From Bispira polyomma (taxonomy: Eukaryota), in NCBI GenBank assembly GCA_965649765.1, contig OZ287752.1:56668001-56732000 (forward strand): 64,000 nucleotides of DNA, written 5' to 3'. The translations under genes and the position numbers were made by a program. Below the pieces are notes generated by a model, which worked only from the letters and a program-made list of their open reading frames with translations, had not been told where the DNA came from and searched no databases. Numbering within the stretch: the stretch's first letter is position 1; each line of letters starts with the position of its first letter. This document shows, one piece after another, positions 5,745-51,190 of this stretch.

Positions 5745-5909
5745 TCAGATCTGGTGAGCACTGTTTCCTAAGAGTATTCTGTAGATGTCAGAGATCTGAT
5801 GGTACAAGTAGGACATGGCCACCAGACTGTATTTGTCTATGACATCCTTCTGATCAATGACAGACAGGGATATTGGTCTGTAGTTGATTTGGTGGTCTTC
5901 AATCTCATA
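5745..5909 (-). CDS. Gene A terminal exon (CD loop + putative helix D)
   Basis: ctatttttcag acceptor, phase 0, 54 codons to TGA. Confidence 0.85.
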   Translation of the reverse strand, partial: YEIEDHQINYRPISLSVIDQKDVIDKYSLVAMSYLYHQISDIYRILLGNSAHQI

Positions 5910-8900
5910 CTGAAAAATAGTGTGATAATGTTGGGTACTTAAAGCAATTGTTACCCTGGTTTTGCTGTGTACATGCAGTGTGTATGTCATTATTGTAGTT
6001 TATTGTAATTGATTTACCTTTATCCGGTAATTGAAGTGCTGATTGATCTTTTATTGACTTCCCAAGTATAGCCAGCCAGTACTAGTAACTGTCATTCCCC
6101 AAAGCGAAGAGAGAAGCTTGAGGGTGACTGATTATATAGGTTTTTAATAATCCACTTTTAATTTAAACTTTGTATAGCCATATTAAGTAATCCAGTGTTA
6201 CACATTAAAACCCATCACTTACCCTATATCTGATGAGACCTACTAAATCAGTAAGCCCACTGTTGATGTACATGTTCAGTTCAGAGAAGAGCCTCTCTTT
6301 GGGTGTTCTATCAGGTCTACACGCCATTGAACACAAGAGTGTATCCTCACCAATACAGTCATTAACCTGGACAGAAGCCAGTCCTACAGTTACAAGGGAA
6401 TCAGCTATGTGCTCAAGATACTTACTCCTCAGATACACTTCTTGGAGTCTTGCCATCTGAAAATGTAATTGTAAATGTGTAGGTTTATGGCTGATATCAC
6501 CTTTAGTGAGGTATTGTCCAACTTTACAATTTACAACCCGAGGGTGAGTTCTTTCAGTTGTCTTAGAGATATTAGAGATGTTGTTTTTGTAGTAATATAA
6601 CAAGTATGTACTGTCTGGTATCTATGGCACATACAAAAATCAGTTTACTGGTTTACTACATAGCTTGCATTGTGATGGTCACAGAACATTATAATAACCT
6701 CATTTAGAACATTTGAAATATGCTATATACATACATATATACATGTTTTGCTGGAGATTTATGTTTGTTTCTAGGGATTGATTTATATTTTATATGGGTT
6801 TTTATTGGTGATGTGTGTATGTTTTAATATTGATTACAATGGAAAACCTATATTTTTCAAGTTTCACATGCAGTTAGTGGACGGTTAAACTAGAAACTAA
6901 CACAGTGTAAATTTGCTTTCATATAAAATTTAAACAAACTTCAATTAAAAAGCTTCTTAGATTGCATCTTTATTTGTTATATTATTCTTTTAAAATAAGC
7001 ATGTGACATTTTCTGTTTTTAACAAAGCTTTTTGAGACGTTGTAAATGACCATATACAACAAAAATACTTCTTATTCATGTGCCTTTTATTTGAAGAGTT
7101 AATTAATGCTATCGTGACTTCCCAAGTACAGTCAAAAAGTAACTGACATTCCCCAAACTTATACGACACATGGTTGGAGATGACGATTTATTAACGTTGC
7201 CAAGGTTTCTTATCTCACCACTGGGGATAGGCCCCAAACACTGAAGGCTGCCATTTTAAGTTTCAGTAATTATGATATATAGAACACACCTCAACAAATT
7301 CTAAATGTCTACACTGATATACCACACAATTGTTAGTTATAGTGACACTAACCCATTCAGTAGGGACAGATGTCTGTTGAGGAGATGGATTGTTGAGTCC
7401 CACAGAGTCATAGCTCTCGGCTGATACTGTGCGACACCATTCCAGAGCTGTGACTTCATCTGTCTCCGTGAAAAAACTCTGACACTGAAAATTTTAACAT
7501 GGGATTAATCTATGGCACTGCAGTGTGTTTATAAATTTGTAAACCTAGTTTAACATATATCTGACGTGCAACTGCAGCAATAAATTTTAAAAATTATAAA
7601 AACTAGAATTGCAGTACAAATATAAGAAACAAAATACCAACTGTTTAAACATATAACTTGACAAGGAACTGCAGTATTTATTAATATTTTGACAACCATT
7701 AAAACATGTATTTACGATGGAACTACAGCTTCTAGTAAACATTTGACAACTATATACTTGATGTGGAACTACATTATGTAAAAACTTTGACAACTATTTT
7801 AACACACATTTGATATGGAATGGCAATAGTTGATAAGAAATTGACAATTACTTTAAATTAAATAAAATGTTTGATATGGATGTGTAGTGTTTGATACAAA
7901 TCTGACATTTATTTGAACATATATCACAATTATTCAAACATTTAAACATATATTTGTACCTAAAAGCCAGGTCACACCTACACGTGCCAACGTCTCACAA
8001 CACAGTTAAACAATAATATAAACTGAAGACGCGGTAGTTCGTGTAAAAGTGACGTCATTTTCACAAAGGTGCAGTCGATTGTGATGTTTTATGACGTTTC
8101 ATGGCGATGTTGGTACTTTTACAGACGGAAAAAAAAAAATAACTTACATATCTAGTGTAAATTCTTTGACTCTTCAAAAGTAGGTCATAGTACAACATTT
8201 CTAGATTTTCATCTCTTCCTTTTCTGGTGTGTGGCCTCCGGGCGTGTGAAACTTGCAACAGCATTGCCAAAGCCAGCAGACATACAAGTGTGAAAACTGG
8301 AAGTAGATATTAAGTAGGTGTTCTATTTCTTTAATTCAAAAACACATTTGCACGATATTACATGGCGCCATTATCGTGTATACTCAATATGTTATAATGC
8401 CAAATTCCCATGACTACAGGTGTTACAAATATTGCTTAAGTAGTATTTTGATTGAAATATCATTTTCGGTAATTGATACGGTATTTAATTTAACTAATAT
8501 TCACTATGGACCATTTTCAGAAAACAAAGCAGATATATCAAAACATTTTTACTATCCAGAGTCATCATTGAATATAATACTCATAAAATAGATAAAGATA
8601 TTGTTGTAGTTGTGTAGCAATATGTACCCATTGCATATTGCTACCTTTATCTGGTATTCAAAGTGGTAGCTACACTTTTTTGACTGCTCAAGTACAGCCA
8701 ACCAACACAGTAACTGTCATTCCCAACTAAATGGTGAAAGCCTCAAGGATGGCCATTTATCACCGTCCTGATCGGGAGACAAAAAGACGGGAAATGTTTA
8801 ATTGCATTTGCATATATTTGCATTCCCCGTTTATCACCTATTTTAACCTCCGTTTTAACTCTGTCATGCCCAGTTTATATAACGCTTTCTCCAGTTCTAT

Positions 8901-11103
8901 GCAGTTCCGGCCAGATCATACAAGTTCTAAGTAGTTTAAGTTCCATTTAATCCGATGTAGCACCAGATTTTAACTCCCCTTTTTTTCTTGGGGGGGGGGG
9001 GGATTTGACAAGGGGGTGCTATATTTTCACTCCCCCCCCCTTGCAAAATTTTTACTCCCCAAATTATAATTGCCATTAGGGCATTATAGCTATTATAGAT
9101 CAATAGGAGGTAACACTGTGGTATGTGGGTTTTCATTTATATATTCATGGCAAATTGGTGAAAATATGGCAGCCCCCTTGCCAAATTTTTACTTCCCAAA
9201 TCATAATTGCTATATGGGCATTATACTTATTATAGATCAATAGGAAATAACACTGTGGTATGTGGGTTTTTGTGTATATACGATGGCAAAGTTATCTAGG
9301 TAGGGACCCTATTATAATAACTCACAGGTTTGAGAGTAATGTAATGAGTTTGGTTAAAACACTAATTTCATTAAAATATTTTAGTTTAAATGATTTTCAT
9401 CTTTATCATTTCTGTACATACAAATCTAAATTTACATGTTTGGTTGTATAACAAATAACATATATATATATATTTACATAGGAAATTCAAATTTTTGAAG
9501 AATTGAAGATATAGAATATAGATATAAATTGAGAATTTCATCATTTCTGCAAAATAGTACAGATTAACACCTATTTTTTTACACACATTGAATTGGAATA
9601 TTCTATTTAAACTGATATATAAGCCTTAAGGCTGAGTGTTACATTAATAAAACATGTGAAACTTTGTATATCCGTACATGTAAAACACACTGTCAGTATA
9701 ATTAGGTAATTTATCTATCTATTTACATATACAATATACATACATAAACCTTTGAAGTTAACTAGGATATTAGATAATTGGCTTCTCATTGTGGTATACA
9801 ATACAAAGCGGAATTGATTACTAAACAACTGAATGTGGTTTTTCATAAGGAAACTCATCAGTACCTTGATTACTTGATTGTTTGATTAACTGGATTACTA
9901 GATGATTAGATGTGGCTCCTCATTGAGGTATATACTACTACAAAACTGGCTTGATCACCTAATAACTGAATTTAGCTTCTTGATTACAAGCGGCTTCCCA
10001 TAATTTAGTTGATTACTTCACTAAACGTGGTTTCTCATAGTGTGGTAAACATTTTTTATAGTAACTTCATGAAATACCCTTTGAAATTATCTTGATAGTT
10101 GCTTCTTACTTTTAAATAGTGGAATTAGACACATGGCTTCTCTTGAAAACTGGGCAACATTAAGTGTATATAAAGAGAGTGATATAAAAGTTAACTTTAT
10201 TATATTTCATATGTTGTTAGTTAATGAAAGCGTTGTATGAAGAGTTTATTTATTTAAGTATCAGTACCAGCCACAACTCCTAAATTATCTGCTTTATCCA
10301 AGTCATCCCATGCCATATCAACAATAAACCAGTATTTTTACAATCATCATTTGTTTTGCAATCGATATATTAATTATTGTTTTATTTATCGTTAAAAATT
10401 TCTGGCTGCAGCTCCCGTTCTTGCCATTTATGCTCGTTTAAGCCCAGTTTATGCCCACGTTTACTCAAGTTCACACATGTCCTCAGAACGGGGACAGTGT
10501 AAATACCACTTAACTATTTGATCTGACTCGAACCCCAATTTTTTTTTCATTCCCAAACTAGAATGTTGCCAACTAGGCCATAGTGGCAGAGAAAAAGCTT
10601 TTGTTAAAGTAATGTGAAGGCATTTGCAACTAAAATACAAAATCATCTGATTCACAGTTCTAAAACACTGTTCTAGCAGCAACAACATCACTCAGAATAG
10701 CATCAGTAATGGAGTGGCATCTTAACCAATGTTTTATGTCTCCACATTTCTTTAGCATGTGACTGGCAATAGCAACAATTTTAGGTGAGCCCCCCAAAGA
10801 TCATAGACATGCCTCAAATTAATGTTGTAGTTAGAAATCTACCACAATCAGATCATATATGATCATAGCCCAGGATGCCATGCCAACAGATGCACTACAT
10901 ATTTTGAATATATATTTGTCACGGTCACAATGTCACACTGTATGTTATAACAAAAGAAAACTAAAACGTTTTTGTGAAAATTAATATAAATGAAATAATC
11001 TGTAACCGCGACAAAAATTAATTCTTACCTTTCATTTTGACGTGAAAATTAATATAAATGAAATAATCTGTAACCGCGACAATAATTAATTCTTACCTTT
11101 CAT
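5745..11103 (-). CDS. Gene A: secreted 228-aa predicted four-helix (long-chain class-I cytokine-like) protein, 5 coding exons
   Basis: Exons 11103-11097 (or duplicate 11035-11029), 8296-8148, 7484-7353, 6456-6223, 5909-5745 all have GT..AG ends and join in one frame (687 nt incl. stop), phases 1,0,0,0. Protein: MKVFTLVCLLALAMLLQVSHA-RRPHTRKGRDENLEMLYYDLLLKSQRIYTRY/CQSFFTETDEVTALEWCRTVSAESYDSVGLNNPSPQQTSVPTEW/MARLQEVYLRSKYLEHIADSLVTVGLASVQVNDCIGEDTLLCSMACRPDRTPKERLFSELNMYINSGLTDLVGLIRYR/YEIEDHQINYRPISLSVIDQKDVIDKYSLVAMSYLYHQISDIYRILLGNSAHQI*. Gene model is well supported; cytokine identity is inference. Confidence 0.8.
6223..6456 (-). CDS. Gene A exon 4 (putative helices B and C)
   Basis: cattttcag acceptor, AGG|gtaagt donor, 234 nt open, phase 0-0. 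Confidence 0.88.
7353..7484 (-). CDS. Gene A exon 3 (putative AB loop)
   Basis: aattttcag acceptor, TGG|gttagt donor, 132 nt open, phase 0-0. Confidence 0.85.
8148..8296 (-). CDS. Gene A exon 2 (signal peptide + putative helix A)
   Basis: Acceptor ctacttccag, donor TAT|gtaagt; hydrophobic FTLVCLLALAMLLQVSHA. Confidence 0.85.
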
Positions 11104-11109
11104 TTTGAC
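10974..11109. repeat. 68-bp tandem duplication containing the start codon and donor of gene A
   Basis: 10974-11041 vs 11042-11109, one mismatch. Confidence 0.95.
11097..11103 (-). CDS. Gene A exon 1 (ATG AAA G, phase-1 donor)
   Basis: Minus strand reads caaaATGAAAG|gtaaga. Joined to exon 2 it gives MKVFTLVCLL. An identical copy lies at 11029-11035. Confidence 0.7.
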
Positions 11110-11173
11110 AGTTTGAAATAATAGCAAGAAATTATTCAATTTAATGGTTATTGAATGCAAGACTATGCTCTAA

Positions 11174-11203
11174 TTCTTAGAATAGCGTGTGCTTCTATAT
11201 ATA
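11174..11203 (-). promoter_or_regulatory. Candidate core promoter of gene A: TATA box with adjacent STAT (GAS) palindrome
   Basis: TATATATA at 11196-11203, about 95 nt upstream of the exon-1 ATG; TTCTTAGAA at 11174-11182. Confidence 0.4.
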
Positions 11204-13189
11204 CTCTTTAAGACCATTACAAGTGAATTAGATAATCTGGTAATTTTGGCAGTAAGATACCCTTTCAGGTTATACCAGAATGATTTCAGTTTCTTACCTT
11301 ATAAACTATTCCAGGATGCACATCCCAGCACTGATACTGGTCATTCTAAAGGCATATCGTGAGATTTTTAAATCGTCAGTTTTTTCCCAGTTTTGGAATC
11401 ACACCCACCATTATCATACACATTTATATGGATATTGTACATAGCCTGTGGCCTAGTGTGCAAATAGTTTCTAAAATTTACAGATATACACTAAAAAGGT
11501 TATATCACAAAATAAAAACTTTCTGTATATACTGGATATATATAATTTATATGTCAACATCATACATAGCATCTTTGATTTTAATCCTTGAACATGTAAA
11601 GTGTAAAATCGTACAGACACATGTAGAAATATTAGTAGTTCCATGTGTGCAATGGAATTCCCTAACATGTAATAATTCTCGTCTCAGTTTATTTCCTCAT
11701 TGATATTTGCTTTGTGACCTAATATACATATATAAAATCTGACCTGCCATTTCAGGCCTGTGTCAATAACCAGAGTTAATGGAAAGAAAATGAGTCCTAA
11801 ATGTAAATATACTTAAGTGAGTAGTGGAAGATATTCAGAAAAAATGCATCTATTTTAAAAACAACTGGTATTCGATACTCACAAATTCATGACCTGTTTG
11901 GTTACATTATATTGGAATTCCGGTGTACATCGTGACAGAAACTAAGATTTAATAAATTTATGCATATTATAGATGAAATCTGAGCTAATCTATTTGGGCT
12001 CAAGTTAAAAATATAAACGAAATGATAAAACAGGAAAAAATCAAGTCTTTTTTGCCATATTTTATTTGATATGTAAGGTTTCAAATTCAAATATCAAATT
12101 GTGGACTCCTGGTGACAGTGCTGGATTTGTGACACAAGAGTCCTTAGTTTGATTTTCAGTGTGTAAATGTGTGTAGGTTCTTCCACTTGTGAACCAATTG
12201 TTCATTCTCAGCTGCCGCAGGAAACATACTAGCCATGCAGCCATATTTTTACACTTGGCTAGAGAGGGACAACTTTTGTGTAAAACACCATGTCCAAGGA
12301 CACAATCTCCAGGCCAGCTGCAAGGATTGAAACCTTGAAACACTAAAGTTTGACACTCTAACCACTACGCCTAGTGGTACTGTGGTTTACATCTGTTTAG
12401 ACACTTTTCATGAGATCTGTCCATAGTATTGTCCATCTTTATCCATGTGTGGTAATAGGTAACTAGTTGCTTGAATTTTGGTGTGTGAACAGAGATGGTA
12501 CCTTTTCAAAGAGAACAACTAAGAGTGGACAATTATTTGACAAAAAAACTTTTTTTTTGAAAATAGCATGTTACTCAATCAAGACCAAATCATGAATTTC
12601 CCCCTTACTGCGTTGGTTGTGGTTTCAACTGTCAGGGGACATTTGATATAAATTTAATTTTAAAAAAAACAACATTTTAATAGGAAGTTGAAAATTAAAG
12701 TTCCTGCAAACACCGGAGCTACTGTAGATACATAGGAATTAATTCAATTTAGAAATATGACAAAGCAAAATAACATTTAGTTTTTAAAACCTCGAGATAT
12801 AACCTATACTTTTAGTTTTCGGTCATTTTCAATTCCAATTGGTTGATATTTATGATTTCCCTTTTATCAATTAAAAAGAAAACATATGTTGGTAAGACTG
12901 GAAAAGGGATAAGGGATTTGTCGGATAAATTGTTTTTAAGCGTACTACCGGATGTTATGTATAGTACTTATGAAGTGCAATATACTCTGTTTGCAAAGTG
13001 CACATCCACAGCCATATTCAAGAAGTACAATCCAAATGTATTGCAGGTCAGTATCCAGTGATCACTAGGGCATGAAATCACACTAACCAAAACAAATGAC
13101 TCCTTAGCTTCGTTCTGAACAAGTGTTATAAAAAACAGTGGTGCACTATATATATCAGACTTTTTTAGCACTTATTTTCGTTGTAACGA

Positions 13190-13730
13190 ATTCTAAGGCG
13201 CCAAAAAAACCACAGCCAGAGTCGAAAAACATAGGTGATAGACAGAAGGAAGTCGTCATCAATGCGTCCATCGAGAATGGCAAAGAGACTATTGAGGAAA
13301 TGCATCATTGAACAGATAGGTCTTTAAACTACACCGGAAGAAATACAGGGATGGAGCTGTCCTAATGTGTTGAAGCAAACTATTCCATAGGGTAGGGGCA
13401 TCATTTGCAAAACTTTTATCAAAGTGAACCTTTGACCTGTGTACTTATATTTTGGAACAAGAAGGAATCTATTTTTGGGAGCGGCTCTCCTGGTATTGAC
13501 TTTGTACTTGTAGTAGCTCAAGTGTGGTTCAAAGTATTTAGGCAAACCTGAATCGAGAAACTTATATACTATTGTAGCAGTTTTAAAAACACACCGATAC
13601 CTAACTTTGAAGCATTTCAAAGCTGAGCAGAACAACTGACCAGGCGTGCCAATGAGTTCTGGATGCATTGCAATTTCAATGTGACTAACACTCCTCAGTT
13701 TGGCTGGGTCGATTGCTTGCAAACAATCCA
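13190..13730 (-). mobile_element. LINE 3' remnant
   Basis: ORF2 C-terminal-like text (VRYRCVFKTATIVYKFL...VNTRR); related to the remnants at about 17620-17900 and 49000-49500. Confidence 0.6.
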
Positions 13731-14399
13731 TGAAGACCTTATATATTATTTCCAAAATTTATGAATTTTATCTAAAAAAACGTCTTGAGATGTATTTTTA
13801 TTAGTCAATTTGTCTATTTCCGGTATTTTGTCCACCATTTTAGTTTTGCTGAAGCCATCACTTGACAAGTATATAATGTTAAGGACATTTCTACTGATCT
13901 TTCCTTTTCTTAGGTAGATAGAATTATTTTGATTTCTGATCAAAGGTGGCCATAATAATTAAAATGATATCATTGGGTATCTTTGGTATTAAAAAAAATT
14001 GTCAATCTGTTATTCTGTCAAATTATTTCTATCAGAAAAAAACCCCGGGAAATCCCACAGGAAGAGATGGTGTGTGCATGCGCCAACAGGTTCTCGCTAG
14101 CAAACATGGAAGATAAATTCACAGAAACCTTTTATATATTGTGTATGAATTTAAATACTGATGATCAGCATTCAATAAAGGTTCTTATACAAAATATAAC
14201 CATTTATCTTCAATTCTATATATTTTTTGCTAGCCAAATCCTTATTTTAGGCTGTTATTTCTTAAGTTTTTGGTGTCATTACACTTTACAAAGATTTGCT
14301 ATAGTAAGAGACTCTGTCCCTCGACGAGCGTACATCACTAAATCGAAGCACACAGTTGAGTGGGAAGGATATTCTATTCTGAAGTAGATGGCACAGTAA

Positions 14400-16400
14400 T
14401 AATAATAATTAAAAAATTTATAAAGTGTCAAATTGATAAGAACATCCTCAAAGGCGCTGATATCAACAAGGGAAAAAATCCACAGACAAGCAAAAGTCAT
14501 TACCAGAAAAGCATCCCCCAAGGGAAGAGTGACTAAGGAGAGGGTGTAGGTCAGTCTGAAAAGGTAAGTTTTTAGATGGCTTGTGAAAGCAGTAAATTTA
14601 TCCTGTGATATGACAGTGTGTGGGAGTTTGGGAGACGGTGAGGAAGTTTCCCTAGGTAAGGCTATTACATTTGATAAGTGAGGACAGATAAGGAGGTTGG
14701 TTGAGTTTGATAGCTTTAAACACAAGAAGGTTGTATTTTTTTAAAAATCCACTGTTCGACAGTTAGCCAGTGGAGTTTCTTTAGGTAGGGTGAGACATGG
14801 CTAAATTTGTTAAGCATATACACAATACGACAGAGGGCATTTTAGACTCTTTGGAGCTTTGTTATATTGACCCTATTTATACTGTTTAGCAAGGCCTTGT
14901 AATAGTCTAGCCAGCTGCTTACCATTTCGTTACCCACCTGGGCCACAGTTTCGAGTCTGAGGTACCTGCGTATTATGCTCAGGTCGTGTAGATGGTAGTA
15001 GCATGCCCGACCGACACTGGCTGCATGACTACAGAATGAGTTATCTCAGTTAAAAATAATACCAAGGTTTTTAACTTTACTTGATGGTGACATATTAGAG
15101 TTTAGTAGACTGATCAGAAAAACTGATTTGAAATTGTCTCAAAATTTGGTTTTATCTAGGTTGATTTTAAGCTTGATGCTTTCCATCCATGTTTGCACAG
15201 TTCGAGGCATTTTGCCAACTCTGATATGCTTGATGTTAAGTTTCTTGCATCAAGCGCCAAGTATATTTTGTGTCATCACCAAACAGGTGGTGAGTGACGT
15301 TAAACTAAGATATTATTTTACTGAGGGGAGTGGTGTACATGGTGAAAAGAAGAGGGCCCTATACAGAACCTTGTGGGACACCATGTGGTAGTGAGAAAGC
15401 TTTTGGGAAATTATCGCCAATTTTGTGGTGTCTTCGTGGGCCATAAATTTGTTTAATTGTTTTGCCACTGCTTTCTCAATGAGTTTGGAGACAGGTCTGT
15501 AATTTTTAAAGATGTTTCTGTCGAGGCTGGGTTTTTTGAGAAGGGAAGAAATAAGGCGGTTTGAAAACAAGATGGAAAAATGCCTTCCTGGACTGAAAGA
15601 TTTATGATACTAGTAAGGGTGTGATAAGGATGTCGATTCTTTTACCAAAGATGTTGGGATTGGATCCAGATCACAGGATATATTTGGAGATGATTGAATA
15701 ATCTTGAGGAATTCTTCCTTGGACATAGTATGGAAGGAGGTAAAAGTGCTGTGTATAGTGGACAGGTGCGGTAAGATCTTGGAGGATGATGACGAGCTGG
15801 ACCTTAGTTTGGTAATTTTCTCTGAGAAAAATTTACCACAAATATTTGCCAAGTCTCCACTGATTTGCAGTCAGATAGTATTACCGTAGAGGAATTATGG
15901 AGTATTTTTTTTATAAAATTCCACAAGGCCTTTGGGTTATCGCAGTTTTTATTAACAATTTTAGTGTATTGGCCGTGTTTGAAATGTTCCAGCATGTCGT
16001 TGTAGCATTTTGTGTCGGCACAATGTCAGCTTTAAAATCCTAACCATTTATTTTGTTTAGCTTACGGATTGTTATGTGTCTGTAGTTTCATAGAACTCTG
16101 AAGGGGAAATCTACAGTTAGAACTATTACAAGGTGATCTGATAGACCGCTAATATAACATGGCGACTGATGGCAGTTGAGAAGGACTTACTGACGCACAG
16201 CACATCTGAGGTTGGCCATGTATATGGGTGGGCTCATCAATGAGCTGTGTGTTATCGAACTGAGATAAGATATCGGTAAAATTTGTGGACCATGTGTCAG
16301 ATGAATCCATTTGAATATTACGATCCCCGCAGATGACATTTTTACGACTTGATAGAGCAGCAGCTTCTATGGAGACAGTGACGTCATGGGTGCAATATTT
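14400..16400 (-). mobile_element. Degenerate L2/CR1-clade LINE
   Basis: 'SCDLDPIPTSLVKE', 'LLKKPSLD..KNYRPVS..KLIEKAVAKQL'; frameshifts and stops. Confidence 0.85.
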
Positions 16401-19091: not shown

Positions 19092-19348
19092 GGGGCCGCG
19101 GTGGCCTAGTGGTTAGCAAGCATTGCGCTTCACAATCACTGGTCTCTCACCTCTGGGCGGCGTGAGTTCGAATCTCGTCGATGCCTATGTGGGAAAGGTG
19201 GTAGTTCCTTACTGTGGGCCGCTGGTTTCTCTGCAGAACCTTGACCGACTGTATGCAGTGTTTCCTCCAGCGTTTCCAACTACCCATCCCAATATAACCT
19301 ACTAAAAGGTACTAGAGGGGACGTTAAATATCCAAATTCAAATTCAAA
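19092..19348 (+). mobile_element. Full-length tRNA-derived SINE with target-site duplication
   Basis: A box TGGCCTAGTGG (19102), B box GAGTTCGAATC (19164), (CAAATT)n tail, flanked by direct repeat TTAACAGTTGGGA (19079-19091 and 19349-19361). Confidence 0.88.
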
Positions 19349-20917: not shown

Positions 20918-20930
20918 ATGATGGTTATGG
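20918..20930 (+). CDS. Gene B exon 1 (ATG ATG GTT ATG G, phase 1)
   Basis: Kozak-like accATG and G|gtaatt donor; phase fits exon 2; TATA-like run near 20755-20766. Confidence 0.5.
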
Positions 20931-22914: not shown

Positions 22915-22969
<55 letters not shown>

Positions 22970-23061
22970 TACACTGGCATTTTAGTAACAGTCAGAACTG
23001 TAGTTTGACGGACTAAACAATTACTAGCTTTTGATAGTGCAGTAACACCTGCAATACCCCA

Positions 23062-23101
<40 letters not shown>

Positions 23102-25339: not shown

Positions 25340-25392
<53 letters not shown>

Positions 25393-28300
25393 TCATACAT
25401 TGATGTCTTCATTTTTCACTAATAGGACACAGAAACCATGTCTAGAAACAAAAAATATCTATTTATAAATCCATTTATTTCTAGCCCATTTATTCCTAGA
25501 TATTTCTCTTATCCCATGGGCCTGGAGGCAGCATTTCTTTGACAAGTTTGTCCCATTTTTAACATATGGTTTTTGTACAGACAATGAGGGAGGAAACATT
25601 TGATAATAATTAGTAATATATTGATGCAGAAATGTGGGATGTTTGTATTATATAAAAGACCGGAGGTGTTTTTGACTAATATTTACGATTATCTCAACAT
25701 CTGAACAGGTTAAAGACATTATTAAGTGAGACTGCATCTGTATTTTTTTTATCTGATGCCCCAGCTTTAAGTTTAATTTGTTTGGTGTTAAACATTGCTT
25801 TGGAAGCCATCGACATGCAGAATCCTGGTGGTAGAAATCAACATAGAGTTGTTACGATTTTTTTCACTGCAGTCCACCAGCCTTCACCAAGCTCAGACTG
25901 TATCTTTCTCTATTTCTAGGTTATACTCAAGTGTTCACCAAACTATGTCCTTGGCTTTTGACCCTACTTTTGTCAAGTACCAGTCTTTCGTCCCCTGTAC
26001 ACTTCAACCCGTGCCATGATCACCACGTCTCCTCCGAAACACAGCCCAGTCACCGAAGTTCGTGGAGAGGGCAGGACGCCTTCATGACTAAAGTACTCAT
26101 GGACCTGACAAAAACCACAGAAGTCACACAACAAATAAAACAACAGGTGAGGTAACTCGTCATACCATAACAAGAGTTGTCTTTTAAAAAACATAACATG
26201 GGCGCACAGGGTAAAATACATTAACGTTGATATGGCCACTGTATACTCAAGCTGTGCCTGATAAAAATAAGTCTGACACCTTTAAGTTTGGTGGCCGGGT
26301 CAATTTTCTTCCAACCAATCCATGAAGGCCTGACATATTTCTAACATGGCGGTGCCTTTTACAGAATGAGAAAAATATCAGGCACAGCCTGTAGGTAATT
26401 ATACTGAAACAAAGAGTACAAGCAAAGATTGCAAAATAAACATCTCACATTTCTGCCATAACATTCGTGTGCTGGTAACTGGGCTCCGATCACGAACCTT
26501 TGACCTTTGACTGTTGGACTACTCGTATTGGACAATAACCAGGACGTGCACTATAGAAGATGCACAGACATCAAGTATATGGCACTGTCGAAGTTTAACA
26601 TTGATATCAATAGTTTATTTTATTAACAATTAAACACAAGTTTAACATTGACATCAATAGTTTATTATATTAACAATTAAACAAAATACACATCGAGACA
26701 AAAGGTAAAGCATAAGACCAGAAAAGAGGATAATATCATGACACATGTAAAAGACTGTTGTATCAAATGGTGCTTGTAATTTAATTTAGCTTTTTTGGCA
26801 TGGATCCAAGGAGCTATTACATTTCCTTCCATGTCTTTGAAGACTCGTCATTTATATTACCCAGAATTGATGTCTCTCTCTCCCACCCATTGGTGGATTA
26901 AGCATAGTAACTAAATAGTTACTCTATAAACACATTGTGGTGATGACTTTGGTTTTATTTGATACACCATGTTCATGACTATTACCTCAGGCCTATAATC
27001 ATATTTCTGACTTTGATATAAAATGTAATCAGATTTATACTCAGCACATATATCTACCTTCATCTGCGGCAATTAACCCTTTCCTGACTGCAACAGTCTA
27101 CTGCCTCAGTTACTGTCACTCCCCTAACTGAAGAGAGAGGCTTAAGGATGACCATTTACCAACGTCCCCAAGGATCTTTGGCCTGCCACTGGGGATAGGA
27201 CCCAGTGACAGAGGATAGCTATTTTAAGTGGTCATCCGAGCCACTAGACAAACAGGTGTACACATCTTTCCCAAGGATGTTATCCCACCAATGAAATTAG
27301 CAGCCGGTACCGGGAATAGAATCCAGGACCTTCTGATCATTAGGTCAACTCCCTAACCACTAGGCCACAGGGGACAAAAGACACTAAGTGTAAATATTAG
27401 CATAATACCTCACTAATTTGCAATTTATATGAGAAATCAATTTGAATTTAGGCTTCACAATTACTCATTTTGATTAAACAATAATATGTAAATTATCATT
27501 TTGATTAAACAATAAGATGTAAATGCTCACTAATAATTTCATCTCATTGGCTAAAACAACTAAAATAAATATCACTTATAAATAATGTCCTTACAGGGCT
27601 TAGGAAAAAACCTGATTGAAAATTATGTTGTGAAATTATTTTAAGAAGTAATATTTTATCATAATGGAAAATAAATAAATGGTTATTTCAGTGTTGAAGG
27701 GTTTTAACTATATTGTATTAACTTATCCCTTGGTATCTTGTAAATAATTTTCCTGTAGCTTTCATGAAACAATTCCATTTCAGGTTAATTTAAAATCAAT
27801 TTAGTACTGATAATTTTTTTATTAAAGATTACGTAGTCTGATATATCTCTGTATGAATGTAACACTAGTTCTTATATTAAATGGTATTTTTTTATAAATA
27901 GCAGATAAGCATAAAACTTCCAGGTAAATATGAAGAATTGGCTTAGAATGTATGTCATGTGAAACCCATATTGGCAGAAAATCAGCTATGGCATTCTAAA
28001 CAATATTTTCTTATTCACGTAGAGTTTATTTTTATATTGATTTCACTTATTTCGTCTAATGTAAAAAAAAACGTTCCATAGAAACAATATTCTTATTTTA
28101 GTTTGTTATTATCTAAACTATTTGACCGATATATATGTTTTTGTTTTTGTCAGTTGGAGGATGATTTTGAAAATCTTGACCATATCGAATACTTGAAAGA
28201 GCGTGGAGAGATTGATGCCCTTCTTGCGGTGAGTATTACTATAACAAGTTAGACACAATCTTGTGATAGAGCTTTTGATGACTTCTAGGTGACTCTGCAC

Positions 28301-31300
28301 CACCTGTGACAATGCGACTAAAATTGTAAAAAGAGCTTGTTAAATATTCTTTGAAACATGTGATAATTCATGCATGTATTTATGGCCAAGACCCAAGCCG
28401 AGCCCAGCAAAGTTTAACTAACACGCTTGTCAGGAGTCATGAAGAAATAGACCTATTAAGAGTTCACAAGAGTTTGTCAGAGCTAAGTAGGACATACGCA
28501 TAGTTTATCAATAGCTGTCTTGAGTCAGCCAAGACATCCTTGAGTTTTTTCTGAAAATAAACAACAGTGTCCAGACTCTGTGGACAGGAAGGCAGTTCCA
28601 AATTGTGGTCGCAAACATTTATCCCCATATCTATTGTATGTCCTATGAACATCAAGCTGGAGTATATCGAAGGAATAAAGTGCTGAATTTGTTCTTCTGT
28701 ATTGAGGGAGACAATCAAACAGATAGGAGAGAAAGGTCCCTCTGGTGGTAATGTACATCAAAACCAAGACTTTAAATACTATTCTTTTCCAAATGGGAAG
28801 CCAGTGAAGCTGGTGTAGAATGGCATTGATATTTGAGTCCCGTGGTGCATTATAAGCAATCCTTGCAGCTGCATGCTGAATATTTTGAAGCTTTCACAGA
28901 AGATCCTTGCTAATTCCATGTAGTAGGCTATTGCAATAGTCTCAACGTGATGTGATATAGGCAAAAATGAGAGACTTCACTGTGAGGAATCTTCTGATTT
29001 TGGCAATGATTCTAAGGTAAAAAACACTGAAGCTTGAGGACACTTTTTGATGAACAAATTTTTTCATTGTCATACATGAATCAAATATTGCACCAAGATT
29101 TCTAGCGTGTGTTTTACTGTCAGTGGGAATATTGGCAACTGTTACTGAAATAGAGGAATGTTTCTGAAAAAAAATTTGGAGAAGCGAATAACAGTACTTC
29201 AGTTTTATTGTCATTGAAATTCATTGAAATTCATGAATAGCTGAGTGTCATCTGCATAACAGGTGTGGTCAATACCATGGCGAGTCCCAATTTCACCGAT
29301 AGGGGCAGTAAACATTCTCAAAAGGATCGGGCCAAAAACCGAACCCCGAGACACACCAAAATGTAGTTGGATACTTGAAGACAGTTTTCCAGACACAATT
29401 ACCCATTGTGGACGTCCTTGTATGACTTAAACCACTCCAAGGCATTTCCAGTTATTCCAAAACGAGACTTCATTTGATCGAAGAAGTTGCTATGATCAAT
29501 AATGTCAAAAGCAGCACTGAGGTCTACAAGAACAAGTGCCGCCATTTGTTTGTTATAGAGAATGTTTAGTATTTCACTCTAAACTTTGACGATGGCTGTT
29601 TCTGTGGAGTGGTATCGACGGTAAGCTGGCTGCATTATTGCATTTAGATTGTACGAAGCTAAGGGATACTCTAGGCATTTAGCAACAAATTTCTCAATGA
29701 TTTTGGAAACAAAGTTCAAATTAGACACAGGACGGCAGTTCTTCATGTTTTCAGGATCCAAAGAAATCTTTTAATAAGGGTTAATATAACTGCTCTCTTC
29801 ATCTTGTCAGGCACACAGGCTTGTTTCAGGGATAGAGTTACAACATCCGTGATTGGTTGTAGTACAACATCCAAGCAGGACTTCAATAGAAATGTTGGTA
29901 TAGGGTCTAAGATGGAAGGCGCATTTGAAGATGCCATGATGAGTTCGCAAATTTCCTCTGTGGTGGCAGGGGCAAAATCAGTCAAGTGTCCAGAACTATT
30001 CTCGCCGCCCAACTCACACAACAAGTCAGCTGTAGTAAGTGTGTGTATATCCAAATTCAGTGTATTTCTAATTTTGATTATTTTGTCCTCAAAGAAGGTG
30101 TTAAAATCACTAGGTAATTTAGTGGGCTCCATACTTGAGGACAAAACTAGGTCGAAGCTCCAATTGAAGATTCTCTTGGAAACACTAAAAAATTTACTTT
30201 TGTCATTTGCTGTGGTCAAAACTTGAGATCAGAAAAACATTTTTGCATCTTTCTTCTTTCATTAGATAGTTTAAAAATTAAAATTGCTTTTTAAAGCGAT
30301 CATAGTCAGAACGCAAGCCAGATTTTTTCCAGGCTCTTTTATATCTGCGTCTGTTAACACAGAATCTCGGCTTTATGTGTAAAGCTAGGATATAGACAAT
30401 GGTTTGACAAAATGTAAATGAAGCATAAAAATGGGGTTAACCAATTTACACCAAACCCATTTAACTTAACGAAAATGTGTCAAAAGTATTAGTAACATTT
30501 GGAAACTATTAGCATATGTAAAAAAACATTTACCACATTTACTGGGAATTAGTAATAGGTACCAAAACATATGCTTGCCTCTTTATATGTAAACCTTTTT
30601 GAAGATATTTTCCAGATTGTATATAAAGTATAGATTTTAGTATGCCTCATAATAATGGTGCTGTTCCACTATCAAGACTATAATCGGGAGGGGCACTGAT
30701 TATATGATCCTGGCCATATTAAACATTTGGGAAAATTTGCATATAAAGAATAAAAAAATAAAAAGATATGTCTGGAGGGCCCAAAAGATATGTATTTTCT
30801 AAGGAAAGGAAAAGATAAGTCTTAACTGAAAAAATAGGTCTTAACCCCCCCCCCCCCCCCACACACACACACACACAATCTCATAAAGATAAGTCTGCCA
30901 GCTTTGCTAGAAGATCGGGGCAATTATCAAGCCAATTAACCCAATCATAACCCACTAATGACTTATCATTCCCTAATCTTTATGTAGACCTATCTTTTCA
31001 ATCTCTCTCTAAATTGTTTAAAAATTGATCTCGAAAATATCTTTCCATCACAAAGAAAGGGTGGGGGCCATTACGAATTATCATTTCACCTCGCCAAGTT
31101 ATCATGCTATTTGTCAAAGATGGATCCTTTGTTTGTCCCCACCAACTGAAAAAATAACTTGTGGAAACAAAGGATAAGTCGGTTGCAAAGCCCTGATCGA
31201 AAAGATAGGCGAGCTAAACAAACGGTAAATCGCTGGCTCCAGCTGAATAAAAAATAACTTGGGGGTGAACAAAAGATAGGTCGAGGAGTGAATTAAGAGA

Positions 31301-34300
31301 TTAGGGTGTCAAAAGAAACTCTGGCACGAAAAGTTATTGGTCGGCGTGCATTTTGGGAGGCGGCCTGAGGGTATATAAGGGCGGCTGTGACAGTGATCTA
31401 CATTCATTCAGCTACAGCATCTTAAAGACTTTACAACTATAAACAATTCTACAGACAACAGAGATTATTATTGAGGTTATGAAGTTAGAAAAATAGGAAA
31501 GATCCAAAATACAAAGACACCCAGGCAAAAGACATGTTGTGGCGGGAGTTCTGCTTGGGAAAGCGATTGGACATGGAAGAAGTGAAGAATTGGTTTCAAT
31601 CACAAAGGACTAGCTATGGCAAGCTGAGTATCAGGAAGTCCAGCCAGGCAACACCTGAGTTGGCAGAGAAGCAGCACTGGGTCAAGAACACCTTTGACTT
31701 TTTAAAACCTCACATCATATGACATGTCTCGAGAACATCTGGCTTCAGACCCGTCGCATTCACCTCTTTGTCCGTGGCTCCAGAAGAATCACCAACTCCC
31801 ATGTGGGGTCCCAGTCAGAAAGAGATTAGGGCACTAAAACAGAGATGGAGTGTTCCTTGCTGGAGTACTTTAAAGCGGTCTTCAGTCTGTGCCAGATCAA
31901 CTCTGAACCGTAAGGTGGCACTATTTACTGAGCTGAGGAACACGCTGGCCATGATGCAGGACACCATCTCAGGCTTCTTCAGGGATGCCATTAAGCCCAA
32001 GACTGAGGGACCCAGGGAGGCATTTCTCAACTGGTTGACATTGGAAGAAGAGAAAATGCCAGATGAACATACTGACATACTGAATGCCTCGACAGCATCA
32101 TCTCTCTTCAGAGGTTTTGAGTCAGTGACTCACAGTCTCAGCTAACAGAACATAGATAATATTGAGCTGTTCACACCTCTCAATCCAGATGCATAACAAA
32201 CGGATTCCACCCTGAACACTCTAACCAAAGTCGTCTAAAGTACTTAGCCACAAGCCAGCAGCATCACTACAACCACCGAGATGTAGACATCGGCCTGTCC
32301 TCGTCTTCCTCCTCCTTCATTAGTCCCACTGGGGACACAAAAAGGCCCTTTTCAGGGACACCCAAAACATCCAAAAACTGTTTGACCTGTTGTTAAAAAA
32401 ACTCATAAAACCACCTCATGACAAGAAGCATACTGACCTGGTAGACTTTTTTCTCCTTCAGTTCGGATCTGTTAAAAATATAGGCATCCAAGTACGACCC
32501 CTTTCAACCTATGCCCCACACAGAAAACAGTAATCCCCATCTACCGGGGTAAGCATAATGATTGTGTGGTATCCCTTGTAGTGGTACCCTGCTCCAACTT
32601 TTCCTCGGGCATCTCATAGCAATGTATTTGCCGTCTATGGCCCCCAGGGCATTAGCAACATTCCACGTCTTCAGGAATGCAGACTCAACCTTCTTGTAGT
32701 CGTCGGGGCTGGTGGGGCATTTGAGGAATTCTTCCTGGTACTTGATGAAGGCCTGGCAAACTTCTGACACAAACTTTGTTATGGTTGACATGCCCACTAT
32801 GAACGAGTACTGCAGCAATGTGTTGGACTCCCCAGTAGCCAAATGCCTTAAAGTGATGACTATCTTGAGTCCAGGGGCTAGTGCCTTCCTCTACCAGGTG
32901 GTGTGTCCTGTATCCTGTTCCCCACCCACCGCTCCATCTCCTGGAATACATCAGGTGGCATCCTGAGCCCGTTAAGGTCGAGAGGTATGATCGGCATAGT
33001 GGAACAGGGGTATAAGCAAGGGACGTCCTAGCTCTGTTTTAAGTAATAATGATAATACTAACAATAACACTAACATTAATCGCAAGAAAAAGAATATTAA
33101 ATTTGGAAACATAATGCTTTTCTAATTTTGCAACAAGACAAATTAAAGATCGCATGTTAATTATCTGAGGTTGTCTACTATTTCATTTCAAACTAAATTG
33201 AACCGTCCCAAATACTATGCCATTAGTTACATTATCTCTTGCATTTACTTTAACTTGGGTAAACTTTGTGGTCACCTTAGCTCTGTCAGCAGATTAATTG
33301 AGCCATAGGTGTTTTTTTTGGTGTGATCTTATTTTGCTACAAGACTTTTGTTGAGATCACCATTGTGTATGTAAAACAAAAAAAAAAAAGAGCATAACCT
33401 TAAGTTACCTCGAGACAAGAAATTTAGACCTGTAAAAACCTTTTTTAGTAATCTGAGGTCTATACTATTTACATATGTATTTAATATAGATACATGTAAT
33501 AAAAAATATCCTGTATATTATGTTATTACCGAGGTATTTTGGACTTGTGTTTCGTAGTGATTATTAAACATTTAATTTGAATTTAGTTGTTGTTTCAACA
33601 GTTTCGGTCATATGATGATAGCCATATTTTATGGTGAAAGAAACCAGTGCTCAAGCATAGTAAACCACTGGCCTAAGGCAAGAACCTGACAAAATTTCCC
33701 TTCTAAAGGAACAAATGGAATTCGAACCCACATTGTAGCGAGGCTATTGATTGTAGAGCAAACCCTTCTAACCACTAAGCAAACCATGGCCTCTGAGAGC
33801 TTTAAAAAAATAATAACACTGTTTCACCTTTGTGCTGTATGCGTATTTGAGATAGAATTGAAGAAAGTCCATCTAATAAGTCACAATAACTTATTTGCTG
33901 TGAGGAACAAGAACCAGACAAGGAGCCTGTAATTCTACTTCACCTTGGAATGCTTTATGTCGATGAGTATCTGAAAACTAGAACAGATTTGACACCAAAA
34001 TAGAACTTCACTGACAAACTCCTAGTATTTGCCCAATAATTTGACAAGGCTATCACAAATACGGTGGTATTTCCTTTTTATGCGTTTTGACTTAAAATGA
34101 CGAATCTTTCTGATTGGAATATGTCTTCAACTTCAACCCTCTATGCTGAACAGAGATACACATGATAAATATGAATTATATTATAAAAACACTTAAAACA
34201 TTAGATCTTATTTTATTTTCTGTTAATAAAATATCACCCAACTCAAACTACCTAGCTGCATCAACAGCCAAAACCTTATTAACTTACATGGCATCATTTT

Positions 34301-37300
34301 GAACCACTGTAGAAAATACAGGAGAAAAAAATATCATTTAAAATAGAAAACTGGCTCAATAGAGTGAATATAGAGATTGCTTATACCACAAAAGAAAATT
34401 AACATCGTCAGTAAATATATGAAATTATCAGCATACTGTGTTGTCTGTATCAATTGTTAGGTCTTGTTTGTTACATGCAGAAGTAAAAAAAAAAAAAAAA
34501 AAATTTTAAGTTTTAATCAGGTAGTTGAAATATATACACAGTTATATGAATACGATACTAACAGTGTGATGTATTTATGTCTCAGGAAACACCAAAAACA
34601 GGATAGTTATTGTTTGGTTTATCTATATAAATAGATAAAGACATATATTTAATTCAAAATAATTCATAATGGTGGTTCGATATTGTAAGATGACGATGCG
34701 AGGTTTGCTACTTTGGCCTCCCCTGGTAGTCAGTGAAATTAAATACTGTGAAAAAAGGGTGAATATACTGATTTCTTTTTTAAAACCCAACAAGGATTTG
34801 GGGATATTATTATGTTTCTCTCTGGGTTATTTTAAGACTGATATTTCCTTCTAAATTTTGAGGATATTATTAAGATAATTGCACCTTGTGTCCTCGTTGC
34901 CTAACACCACCACAAAAAGGTGTGAGCTTCTCATCCTTCCCCTAATCAAACAACTTAATTAGGCTTTGATTTAACTAAAAATAAATGCTGCAGATTTTCT
35001 CACAGTGTAAATAAAAAGCACTTTTTAGTTAATATATAGATAAACACCAAGTGGTACTACATTATATAACCTTAATGGTGTACGAGGGCCTTTAGGCCGG
35101 AGTACCTATTAAGCTTACATAATGTAAGTGCCATAAGGTGTTTATCGATTATAAAACCCAAATAAAATAACATTTTTAATAAAGTGTAAAAAAAAACAAT
35201 TAAATTAAGAATACTTTTTTAAATATTTACTTTATTAAATGGTAGTAATAACGCTACCACTACATTATTTTCTACCACTACATTATTAGAAAATAATGTA
35301 GTGACACTTCAATAGCAATGCATACTGCTTGGGTTTTATTCCCTGGTAGCTCATAGTCTGGTGCTTTTTCACTTAATTTTGCATTTATTAATTTGAAAAA
35401 ATGAAATAAATTATAATCAAAATTTAAAACAAATTCTTATTTGAGTAGCTATAATGTATCAGTGTACATTCACCCACCTCCCTCTCTGTATTTATAAACT
35501 TCAGGAACCCCTAGCAGACCTGCCCTTTGAGAAACAACTGCTGAACATCTATGCATCACTCCGCCGGGTGGAGCTGTTTACCGGACACATCCGGACCCTC
35601 GTGCTCTCAACTACCAATCACGAATCGGCCCAAAATGTCATCCTCACAATGCTCACTCAACTAGGGCAGGGTGAGTTCTGTGTCCCCCTTTGTGTGTGTA
35701 TGTCAAAGGTCCTCATAAGCTCAATCTCACAACTATCTCCCAAGTCTCTTCTGGGATCATATTCACTAACATCTTTAAACTTAGAAAATTTTCTTATCTT
35801 AGAATAAGAATTTTTTTAGTAAGAATTATGAATAGAAATGTATGCACACATGTTTTAGGATAATCATGTGACCACTGTTTCCTATACTCTCATCCCTAAA
35901 TATGGAGAATGATATTTTAGTCAATATAAAAATTCTTATTTTTCGAATTTTAAGAGTAGGAATATTAGTGAAATAGTTCCCATATCTTCTTGGGGAAGTT
36001 GACACAAATATCCAACACAGCTTTAGAAACTTAAATTTCTCATTAAAATTAATATTTATCAAATGCATAATAAGAATGCCATGTCTTTTTCTTAAGTTAA
36101 GTAAAGTCTTGACCATTCTTAGAATTAAAGATCATTTTTAAACAAAAATTCTAAGAATAAGTAAATATTCTAAGAATAAGAATTTAGTGAATGTCAATAT
36201 TTATATACTTAGAATTATTCTTAGAAATCCTGGGTTTTCTAAGAATAATTCTGAGTATAAGAACAATTCTAAGAATAATAATGTGAGTGAATAAGGATTC
36301 TGGTGTAACTTTGTGTACAAAGAAAGGTATCTACAATCTGACCGCATATTTGAGGTTCTCTGGTGAAAACTCTATATTAAAAGAAATAATCACATGACAT
36401 GGTTATTACCAATAACGAGGATATCATATTTAACCATCTGCTTTCAGCCCCAATCTAAACATATATTTCATTAATAGAAGCTTTTATCAAATGATAAAAT
36501 AATGATGTCCATATAATATTACCTATAATACTGAATTTACAATATTGTTTGTGCAAACCAGGGGCCGTATTCACGAAGGGACTAGGTCAGGTCTCAGGCT
36601 TAAATCAGTATACGTTTGTGCTAGATTTAAGCCTAAGACCTGGCTAAGTCTTTTCTTGATTAAGGCCCCAGGAATCCTGCTTCAACAAGTGTTGAACATA
36701 ATGCCCATATTTGGCATAGTGCATAAAAATGCAATCAGTGTATCAATGAAGAGTTCACACTGTCACTTGGCCATAAATAGATCATAGTTTGATTGCTGGG
36801 TTTAGCCCAATGACAGAAGGAAAAAATGATATATTAATTATTTCTATACATATCATGGGCATAATATTTGGTGAAATAAGAAACAAATGCCATACCTATT
36901 AGTTAAGCCACTAACATTAAAAATGTGTTGGAAACTGGTTGAGTTATAAAGGTTCAGAGTCCAAAATATGCCCCTAAATTAGGATCGTTATTTGATACAT
37001 GCTTCTATCTAAGTGATTATAATCGTAAAATATTTTTATTATAACACCATTAATAAAATGTGAAATATTCTGATCACAAGACCAGATGCCAGTCACAGAG
37101 TGGTTGCGATCTCCTACAATTTTCCAACGATAGTAAGTTGTTAAAGGTTTTCATGATTCTTAAAAGAATTGGCTGAGAAGTTTTCCTTGTTACGTGACTG
37201 CTACCTAGGATTGGTATTTGGTCTCATACACTCTCTGGTAATCTCATATTTTTTATACTTGCCTGCCCAAGTACAGCCAAGCATTACTAGTAGCCATTCC

Positions 37301-37958
37301 AGTGACAGAGGACCTGCTATTTTCAGTGGTCATCCCTGCCACTATGTATCAGCCTGCACCTTCTTGCCACAGGCTGGGTTCAACCCAGCTCTCTGCATTC
37401 CTGGGCCAGCAAGTTATCCTCTGGGCCACATGGGCATATATGTATTACATTGTGTTTTGCATTTTTAACGCGTCGTTTCTTTCAAAGCGCAACAACAGAA
37501 TCAAAATAAAAATGTGCTCTAAAAGACAAAAAAAAAAAGCCAGATTCTAAGGAAGGATGTGGGGGTTAACAGGGAAGGAACAAAGGGGTGTAAGCCATTT
37601 AGCCAAAAGATAGGTTATAAGTTTTAACGCCATTGATCGCCATGTCACTTGGGCAGTTCTATTATTATTTCAAAATGTCAGGTAGGTAAAATTATATATT
37701 TTTTTATATATCAGTATAACATTTCAACCCTTTTTAGGTAATGGATCCGGTGGCGGAATCTTCCCCATTATGTGTAACATCTACAACAAGATCCGTGTGG
37801 TTGAGCCAGTGGTTGAGATCTCCCAACTGATCCCACAAAGCCTCCAGGACAGCAATCAGCTGGCGGACATCCAGGATGATTTCTACCACATCCTTGTCAA
37901 CACCCAAAGAGTGCTGAATAAGCTGACTGGAGACATGCAGCAAATCTCCAGTGTATAG
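20918..37958 (+). CDS. Gene B: secreted 233-aa predicted four-helix (long-chain class-I cytokine-like) protein, 5 coding exons
   Basis: Exons 20918-20930, 25920-26146, 28154-28228, 35505-35670, 37738-37958 join in frame (702 nt incl. stop), phases 1,0,0,1. Protein: MMVMG/YTQVFTKLCPWLLTLLLSSTSLS-SPVHFNPCHDHHVSSETQPSHRSSWRGQDAFMTKVLMDLTKTTEVTQQIKQQ/LEDDFENLDHIEYLKERGEIDALLA/EPLADLPFEKQLLNIYASLRRVELFTGHIRTLVLSTTNHESAQNVILTMLTQLGQ/GNGSGGGIFPIMCNIYNKIRVVEPVVEISQLIPQSLQDSNQLADIQDDFYHILVNTQRVLNKLTGDMQQISSV*. Exon 1 is the least certain. Confidence 0.78.
22814..23099. repeat. About 100-bp near-perfect inverted repeat around a (TA)n microsatellite, followed by a second (TA)n
   Basis: 22814-22916 is the reverse complement of 22964-23067, with one mismatch seen. 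Confidence 0.95.
23240..23660 (+). mobile_element. L2/CR1 LINE fragment
   Basis: Broken frames with 'RPVSNLTYVSKLIEKAVAKH'. Confidence 0.7.
25920..26146 (+). CDS. Gene B exon 2 (signal peptide + putative helix A)
   Basis: Polypyrimidine tract tctttctctatttctag, CAG|gtgagg donor, GC-richer open frame with hydrophobic PWLLTLLLSS. Confidence 0.82.
26249..26393. mobile_element. Short MITE
   Basis: Terminal inverted repeats gctgtgcctgata ... tatcaggcacagc; related internal sequence at about 41135-41340. Confidence 0.6.
27075..27372 (-). mobile_element. tRNA-derived SINE (second family)
   Basis: Minus strand begins ctgTGGCCTAGTGGttaggg...ggattctattcccggt; body-related fragments at about 6055-6130, 7115-7260, 8685-8765 and 37265-37340. 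Confidence 0.65.
28154..28228 (+). CDS. Gene B exon 3 (putative AB loop)
   Basis: Strong acceptor ttttgtttttgtcag, donor GCG|gtgagt, 75 nt open, phase 0-0. Confidence 0.78.
28470..30360 (-). mobile_element. Degenerate L2-clade LINE ORF2 in intron 3 of gene B
   Basis: 'LDPIPTFLLKSC', 'KNCRPVSNLNFVSKIIEK', 'HSTETAIVKV', 'GVSRGSVFGPIL', 'CYADDTQL', 'ARNLGAIFDS'; multiple frameshifts. Confidence 0.92.
30700..33030. mobile_element. Decayed PIF/Harbinger DNA transposon (MADF/Myb-like ORF on +, DDE transposase on -)
   Basis: + strand 31534-31722 'EEVKNWFQSQRTSYGKLS..KSSQA..EKQHWVKNTFDFLKPHI' is MADF-like. - strand 32504-32860 'LATG..LQYSFIVGMSTITKFVSEVCQA', 'ALGAIDGKYIAMRCP' is HARBI1-like. Subterminal AAAGATA(A/G)G repeats at 30760-31280; ends approximate. 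Confidence 0.85.
33580..33792 (-). mobile_element. tRNA-derived SINE remnant
   Basis: Minus strand has an A-box-like ttagtggttagaag and B box GGGTTCGAATTCC. Confidence 0.55.
35505..35670 (+). CDS. Gene B exon 4 (putative helix B, start of helix C)
   Basis: aaacttcag acceptor, CAGG|gtgagt donor, GC-rich codon usage. Confidence 0.85.
35752..36302. mobile_element. AT-rich MITE-like element with TTCT(T/A)AGAA repeats in intron 4 of gene B
   Basis: Imperfect inverted ends (ggatcatattcact ... agtgaataaggatt) and repeated ttctaagaa/ttcttagaa units. Confidence 0.5.
37738..37958 (+). CDS. Gene B terminal exon (putative helix C end, CD loop, helix D)
   Basis: ccctttttag acceptor; phase 1 matches exon 4; ends at TAG. 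Confidence 0.85.
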
Positions 37959-45452: not shown

Positions 45453-45593
45453 NNNNNNNNNNNNNNNNNNNNNNNNNNNNNNNNNNNNNNNNNNNNNNNN
45501 NNNNNNNNNNNNNNNNNNNNNNNNNNNNNNNNNNNNNNNNNNNNNNNNNNNNNNNNNNNNNNNNNNNNNNNNNNNNNNNNNNNNNNNNNNNNN
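45453..45593. other. Assembly gap
   Basis: Run of 141 N. Confidence 1.
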
Positions 45594-50908: not shown

Positions 50909-51190
50909 ATGGCAAACTGTAAACATTGCGCCCCTTTATTGCGTTTCTTTGCACTTCTTTCAATTGTTGCATATTCACAAAGCAAAATATTTCAATTTAA
51001 AGATAATTCCTTTGAAGCAAACGTTCTTCACAAACCGTTTGGTGACTTTGAAAGTAACAAAGAGCGTCAGAGGTTTGTTCGTGATACGGGCACTGCACAA
51101 GGAAGCAATCTACCCAAATCAAAATTCCTAGAATTAAACCATCCAAACCATAATCAGGCAGTTCTGCATTGGTCTGGCAGAAATAGCGAT
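50909..51190 (+). CDS. VPS10 receptor exon 1
   Basis: aaaATGG start, signal peptide, HNQAVLHWSGRNSD, GAT|gtaagt donor. Confidence 0.92.

Follow-up and report, generated by a model that had tools for sequence, protein, structure and literature searches.

The 64,000-nucleotide stretch of the Bispira polyomma genome analysed here (the window, C5:56,668,001-56,732,000 in a searched genome of 1.035 Gb and 75 contigs) carries two head-to-head five-exon genes, A on the minus and B on the plus strand, which comparison with a second genome shows to be real, conserved and unannotated genes for predicted secreted helical proteins. Both families are unnamed, and our literature search found no description of either. 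As judged from sequence, the two genes are good candidates for the missing lophotrochozoan JAK/STAT ligands. That they represent two families of long-chain class I helical cytokine-like ligands of the IL-6/G-CSF/LIF/Unpaired type is the likeliest of the readings considered, although we regard it as evenly balanced. Neither gene can be assigned to a named cytokine family. The observation made in the initial annotation is partly confirmed, and its cytokine interpretation partly supported.

Gene models and their conservation

The two head-to-head genes of the initial annotation were recovered as models with GT-AG introns that encode 228 and 233 residues (Table 1), each opening, as it had proposed, with a tiny ATG exon that ends in phase 1. 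For B, this first exon was placed from sequence alone; its donor is weak, an alternative phase-1 donor lies 3 nucleotides further on, and no counterpart could be identified in the ortholog described below. For A, a 68-bp tandem duplication (window 10974-11135) doubles exon 1 together with its donor, the identical second copy lying at 11029-11035, and a TATA-like box is located upstream of the gene near 11190-11200 in this genome. The exon letters of A were confirmed by genomic contigs from three runs (5400-11300), none of which contains spliced joints. Of the two genes, only A has intron phases of 1-0-0-0; B and its ortholog display 1-0-0-1. Both products begin with a hydrophobic, signal-type N-terminus followed by amphipathic segments and, in line with the earlier description, lack a transmembrane segment (later Kyte-Doolittle 19-residue maxima of 1.2 for A and 1.0 for B). 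Mature B possesses two cysteines, both retained in the ortholog, and its helices are predicted from the amphipathic segments only.

When 1.84 billion proteins were searched with a profile built from gene A exon 4, single-exon frames from another genome were returned; a word-based, length-limited search with the same exon gave no match. Walking along the contig concerned in this second genome (ENA ERZ22147071, ctg31305l) yielded orthologs that are 61% (A) and 56% (B) identical and retain all five exons of A and exons 2-5 of B. Splice sites agree between the genomes, and the fourth intron of B is again in phase 1. The gene order on ctg31305l also matches that of the window, with A, then B on the opposite strand, then a single-exon DYNLRB gene (81% identical between the two genomes); the anticipated synteny with DYNLRB was therefore found, and the head-to-head arrangement has been kept between two well-separated species. 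Synonymous (dS) and nonsynonymous (dN) divergence amount to 1.17 and 0.28 for A and to 2.1 and 0.34 for B, so that dN/dS is ~0.2 for both genes, indicative of purifying selection.

Since the orthologs keep exons and splice sites at this dN/dS, both genes are taken as real beyond chance. The genes are unannotated and their splicing is without RNA support, which would suit models joined by chance from short frames or drawn from dead genes; this explanation is nevertheless very improbable and already largely refuted, given the identical splice sites and dN/dS of the orthologs, the frames that are open throughout, paralogs with the same phases and an NCBI model whose junctions agree (see below).

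Two families and their relatives

The initial annotation had combined A, B and a possible third gene into an ancient tandem cluster of one family, citing three by-eye parallels. All six quoted peptides are present (one of them spans the junction of A exons 3 and 4), but the parallels are no better than those of shuffled sequences. The A-B local alignment score of 31 was reached by 241 of 500 shuffles, and HHalign comparison of the A and B family profiles gave a probability of 0.1% (expectation value, E, 0.56). A and B are therefore two families without detectable homology, and the parallels carry no weight. Family hidden Markov models and cross-species comparison found no third gene in the window; true paralogs of A and of B are located elsewhere on the chromosome.

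The A family comprises seven copies on this chromosome. Approximately 650 kb downstream lie genes C and D (230 residues each, 89% identical to each other), gene F (237 residues) and gene E, in which exon 4 has degenerated. Genes C, D and F each possess five exons with phases 1-0-0-0 and are 21-25% identical to A in local alignments, at a score reached by no shuffle. A separate ortholog of F, 57% identical, occurs in the second genome. Two further exon-4 copies, at 66.154 Mb (L050) and 73.656 Mb (L049), belong to near-identical duplicated segments 7.5 Mb apart; the genes at 66.15 and 73.66 Mb, like the B paralog at 72.11 Mb, are known from one exon each.

Outside these two genomes, the siboglinid annelid Lamellibrachia satsuma carries tandem arrays with at least six annotated hypothetical proteins of the A family (LSAT2_015479, _017409, _001701, _010558, _010559 and _019867; family-profile E 4e-45 to 1e-13). 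These proteins are true homologs with the same exon junctions, the NCBI model of LSAT2_015479 reproducing those of the gene A model; they differ from A in being only ~20-25% identical, and are unnamed and without a Pfam domain. In the NCBI model of LSAT2_019867, exons 1-3 are missing and a piece of intron has been included. The tandem and divergent arrays of Lamellibrachia and a close relative pack no fewer than three genes of the A family into 20 kb (L042, L044, L052). A repeat protein (P0003) was rejected because its match was compositional. Phases of 1-0-0-0 are common to A, C, D, F, both orthologs and the Lamellibrachia gene, as is an exon plan of the family in which exon 2 encodes the signal and helix A, helices B and C share exon 4, and exon 5 contributes a linker and helix D. 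The conserved marks are the Tyr on which exon 2 ends, two Cys within exon 3, a Cys-x3-Cys in exon 4 and a Gln in helix D.

For B, a paralog 15 Mb away (L007) was identified with a local score of 91 against a shuffle maximum of 58. As it carries exons 4 and 5 contiguously, it confirms the last junction of B and, by lacking the fourth intron, places that intron outside any shared IL-6-like plan. A homolog search with the B family returned only the ortholog (P0015, in another assembly) of a different gene, at 46.5 Mb; its candidates spanned 72-229 residues, so full-length kin of B could escape it. This gene and two at 53.3 Mb, of which the last exons were located, are further genes for predicted secreted helical proteins. 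A single last exon holds their helices B-C-D, helix C contains a Cys, and an Arg-Asp motif lies close to helix D. The 53.3 Mb genes form a related pair (z 14.8); otherwise, comparisons of the 46.5 and 53.3 Mb genes with A, B and each other gave no significant similarity. Two other candidates (L004 and L026) were rejected as transposon-like or broken frames.

Comparison with long-chain helical cytokines

Genes A and B each encode a mature chain of ~200 residues, for which four long helices with long AB and CD connections are predicted. For the A family, the prediction includes one Cys pair in the AB connection and a Cys-rich BC insert; for B, it includes one disulfide that joins the N-terminal Cys to a Cys towards the end of helix C. 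If A and B were long-chain cytokine-like ligands, both would be secreted and fold up-up-down-down. Both would bind a Domeless/gp130-type receptor and thereby activate the JAK and STAT that the genome encodes, and their shared position would be the remnant of duplications too old for sequence similarity. STAT_alpha (C13, E 2e-13) and JAK-type FERM_F1 (C2, E 8e-4) matches were indeed found in the genome, whereas receptor-domain matches were sub-threshold only. Among these, a weak Lep_receptor_Ig match (E 0.05) and the JAK-type FERM match are 125 kb apart (C2:67.155 and 67.280 Mb), and two identical weak IL6Ra-bind matches occur at C4:39.92 and 40.14 Mb; we regard them as receptor leads.

Vertebrate IL-6 and G-CSF genes have intron phases 1-0-0-0 and a characteristic exon-to-helix mapping, and the exon layout of IL-6, G-CSF and IL-11 served for comparison with A. 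Both A and B resemble these cytokines in their signal peptide, ~200-residue mature chain, five coding exons and tiny first exon, and their sizes of 228 and 233 residues, with a hydrophobic N-terminus and no transmembrane segment, fall within the ~170-250 residues of long-chain cytokines. The A family additionally shares the 1-0-0-0 phases, an exon 3 that opens with a Cys pair, helices B and C in exon 4, and an exon 5 of 50-55 codons with linker and helix D; it differs in its ~28-residue Cys-rich BC insert, in models that are not up-up-down-down and in the absence of sequence similarity. B, likewise without sequence similarity, departs from the plan in the phase-1 fourth intron inside helix C. 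In LIF, oncostatin M, CNTF and CLCF1, the helix A exon closes on a Tyr at a phase-0 intron, and a disulfide connects the N-terminal segment with the end of helix C. As leads only, the first trait recurs in the A family and in the genes at 46.5 and 53.3 Mb, and the two mature Cys of B fit the second; neither A nor B gave a profile or structure match to this subgroup, and exon numbers differ. The Drosophila Unpaired proteins (Upd1-3, PF15972), ligands of Domeless, provide a further parallel as clustered secreted helical proteins of a protostome that possesses JAK-like and STAT genes.

According to the literature, long-chain four-helix cytokines are marked by an up-up-down-down topology in which the AB and CD crossovers are long (PMC7378365), and the IL-6 gene of fish and of mammals comprises five exons (PMC3271213). 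A 2026 survey reports that IL-6-like ligands have not been found in most invertebrates, or outside insects, though receptor, JAK and STAT are reported in molluscs and other invertebrates (PMC13203501). That gene anatomy can be informative follows from an intron-phase screen which recently uncovered interferons in lamprey and lancelet (bioRxiv 10.64898/2026.05.30.728932), albeit with phases 0-0-0-0, unlike the 1-0-0-0 of A.

Several results weigh against the cytokine-like assignment. Two AlphaFold models were obtained for tubeworm homologs of A from shallow alignments (five near-full-length rows of one species plus exon fragments, with the exon 2 and 3 fragment pieces omitted because mixed-fragment alignments misplaced them). 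Helices of these homologs are predicted at residues 13-42, 83-113, 142-167 and 186-217 plus an extra AB helix, with a similar outcome in a second prediction, in keeping with the four helices of 20-30 residues of long-chain cytokines. The models have predicted template modelling scores (pTM) of 0.35 and 0.57 and a predicted local distance difference test (pLDDT) of 50-60 in helices A and D. No cytokine was found among the top 50 Foldseek or VIA matches of these low-confidence models, which counts weakly and is no refutation, and the better model (pTM 0.57) resembles up-down bundles over residues 31-198. Because the two models match different fold classes, they do not fix the helix packing of the A family. 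Pfam searches, exon by exon and with full-length homologs, gave no match, and none to a four-helical cytokine profile exceeded the curated cut-off, a test expected to be insensitive at such divergence. PDB sequence and ESM Atlas searches were equally negative, PF15972 matched neither A, B nor any locus of the genome (best E 1.7), and the fourth intron of B breaks the 1-0-0-0 plan. The proposal of long-chain four-helix cytokines that act as gp130/Domeless ligands therefore remains plausible from gene anatomy, most strongly for A, while the fold test suggested with it produced no cytokine. Filing under a named family is precluded because the profile tests are negative, B fails the phase test and the fold models of the A homologs are of low confidence.

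These results can also be accommodated if A and B are secreted helical bundles that fold differently (as an up-down bundle of five helices with disulfides) and serve, for instance, as ligands for some other class of receptor, as carriers, or as components of tube, mucus or egg coat, the cytokine-like exon layout being coincidental. Both AlphaFold models pack as ordinary bundles, and the rapid tandem expansion of the A family (the broken copy E, the near-identical pairs C/D and L049/L050, and the Lamellibrachia arrays) is equally typical of effector and structural secreted families. We nonetheless consider this alternative unlikely, given the shallow basis and low helix A and D confidence of the models, the fit of all four intron positions and phases to the long-chain cytokine plan, and the one-to-one orthologs of A and B at a kept position in two species. 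Rather improbable is a mixed case in which one of the two only is cytokine-like, either B, with the other four-exon genes, as an Unpaired/LIF-type ligand and A unrelated, or the reverse. Such a split would agree with the missing homology between A and B, with the single exon that holds helices B-C-D in the B paralog and in the 46.5 and 53.3 Mb genes, and with the failure of the folded A-family homologs to match cytokines. It is opposed by z values below 1.5 between B and the other four-exon candidates, by the negative comparison of B with PF15972, and by the kept A/B adjacency, which hints at a common origin.

On a broader reading, one lophotrochozoan chromosome might hold at least four sequence-unrelated long-chain helical cytokine families (A with seven copies, B with two, and the 46.5 and 53.3 Mb loci), among them genes that would be the first in a protostome to follow the IL-6/G-CSF plan of five exons and phases 1-0-0-0. 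We advance this broader claim as doubtful; if true, the diversification of JAK/STAT ligands would predate vertebrates or be independent of them, and the ligands would have been missed until now because of their short exons and fast divergence. As conserved, expressible candidates, A and B make the question of the missing JAK/STAT ligand directly testable in annelids, and if they prove to be non-cytokine, they still define two unnamed conserved secreted families, one of which is tandem-expanded in vent/seep tubeworms.

Feature coordinates and surrounding sequence

Table 1. Positions of genes A and B, their exons and related features (window coordinates, or contig C5 where marked)
Feature	Position	Strand	Description
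Gene A, whole	11103-5745	minus	5 exons, 228 residues, GT-AG introns, phases 1-0-0-0
Gene A exon 1	11097..11103	minus	Met-Lys + 1 nucleotide, phase-1 donor; same mini-exon in ortholog
Gene A exon 2	8148..8296	minus	Signal peptide, basic segment, helix A; invariant Tyr at phase-0 intron
Gene A exon 3	7353..7484	minus	AB connection; invariant Cys first, second invariant Cys 16-23 residues later
Gene A exon 4	6223..6456	minus	Helix B, ~28-residue Cys-rich linker, helix C
Gene A exon 5	5745..5909	minus	CD connection, helix D, stop
Non-coding element	11381..11405	minus	~290 bp upstream of gene A ATG; 25 bp identical in ortholog
Gene B, whole	25815-37958	plus	5 exons, 233 residues, GT-AG introns, phases 1-0-0-1
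Gene B exon 1	25815..25827	plus	4 codons + 1 nucleotide, phase 1; least certain part
Gene B exon 2	25920..26146	plus	Signal peptide, then conserved Asn-Pro-Cys and helix A; 43% identity to ortholog (E 1e-14)
Gene B exon 3	28154..28228	plus	25 codons
Gene B exon 4	35505..35670	plus	Helix B plus the initial half of helix C; phase-1 intron at end
Gene B exon 5	37738..37958	plus	Remainder of helix C including its conserved Cys, then CD connection, helix D and stop
DYNLRB (Roadblock/LC7)	44683..44982	minus	Single-exon frame; Pfam PF03259, E 3e-21; after B in second genome too
A-family cluster E, C, D, F (L008, L009, L012, L013)	C5:57,313,900-57,367,900	minus	C/D a recent duplicate pair
Gene B paralog	C5:72.112 Mb (L007:1486-1878)	minus	B exons 4 and 5 as single open frame
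Further predicted secreted helical genes	C5:46,502,790-46,507,250 (L039, L032); 53,275,900-53,296,725 (L037, L029)		Layout similar to A/B

Within gene B, intron 4 contains six STAT-consensus sites (TTC-N3-GAA; window 36116-36275) that are absent from the ortholog intron and probably belong to a repeat, and intron 3 harbours a degenerate Harbinger-like DNA transposon (window 31300-33000, recognized by eye from frames). Several fragments of long interspersed nuclear elements (LINEs) are scattered elsewhere between A and B. The 3' kilobase of either gene showed no enrichment of AU-rich elements.

Upstream of DYNLRB, a 39-bp non-coding match (92%; window 45655-45693) is kept in the second genome (L056:1130-1167), and a stretch of N occupies window positions 45453-45593. 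A Vps10-domain gene of the sortilin/SorCS type begins on the plus strand at window 50909-64000, with a Sortilin-Vps10 match (E 3e-10) at 63116-63427. Beside the helical genes at 53.3 Mb, a multi-exon gene (L029:7100-L031:2340; C5:53.302-53.317 Mb) displays repeated ricin-B-like lectin segments by eye and holds an intronic 3.2-kb tandem array of ~24-bp units.

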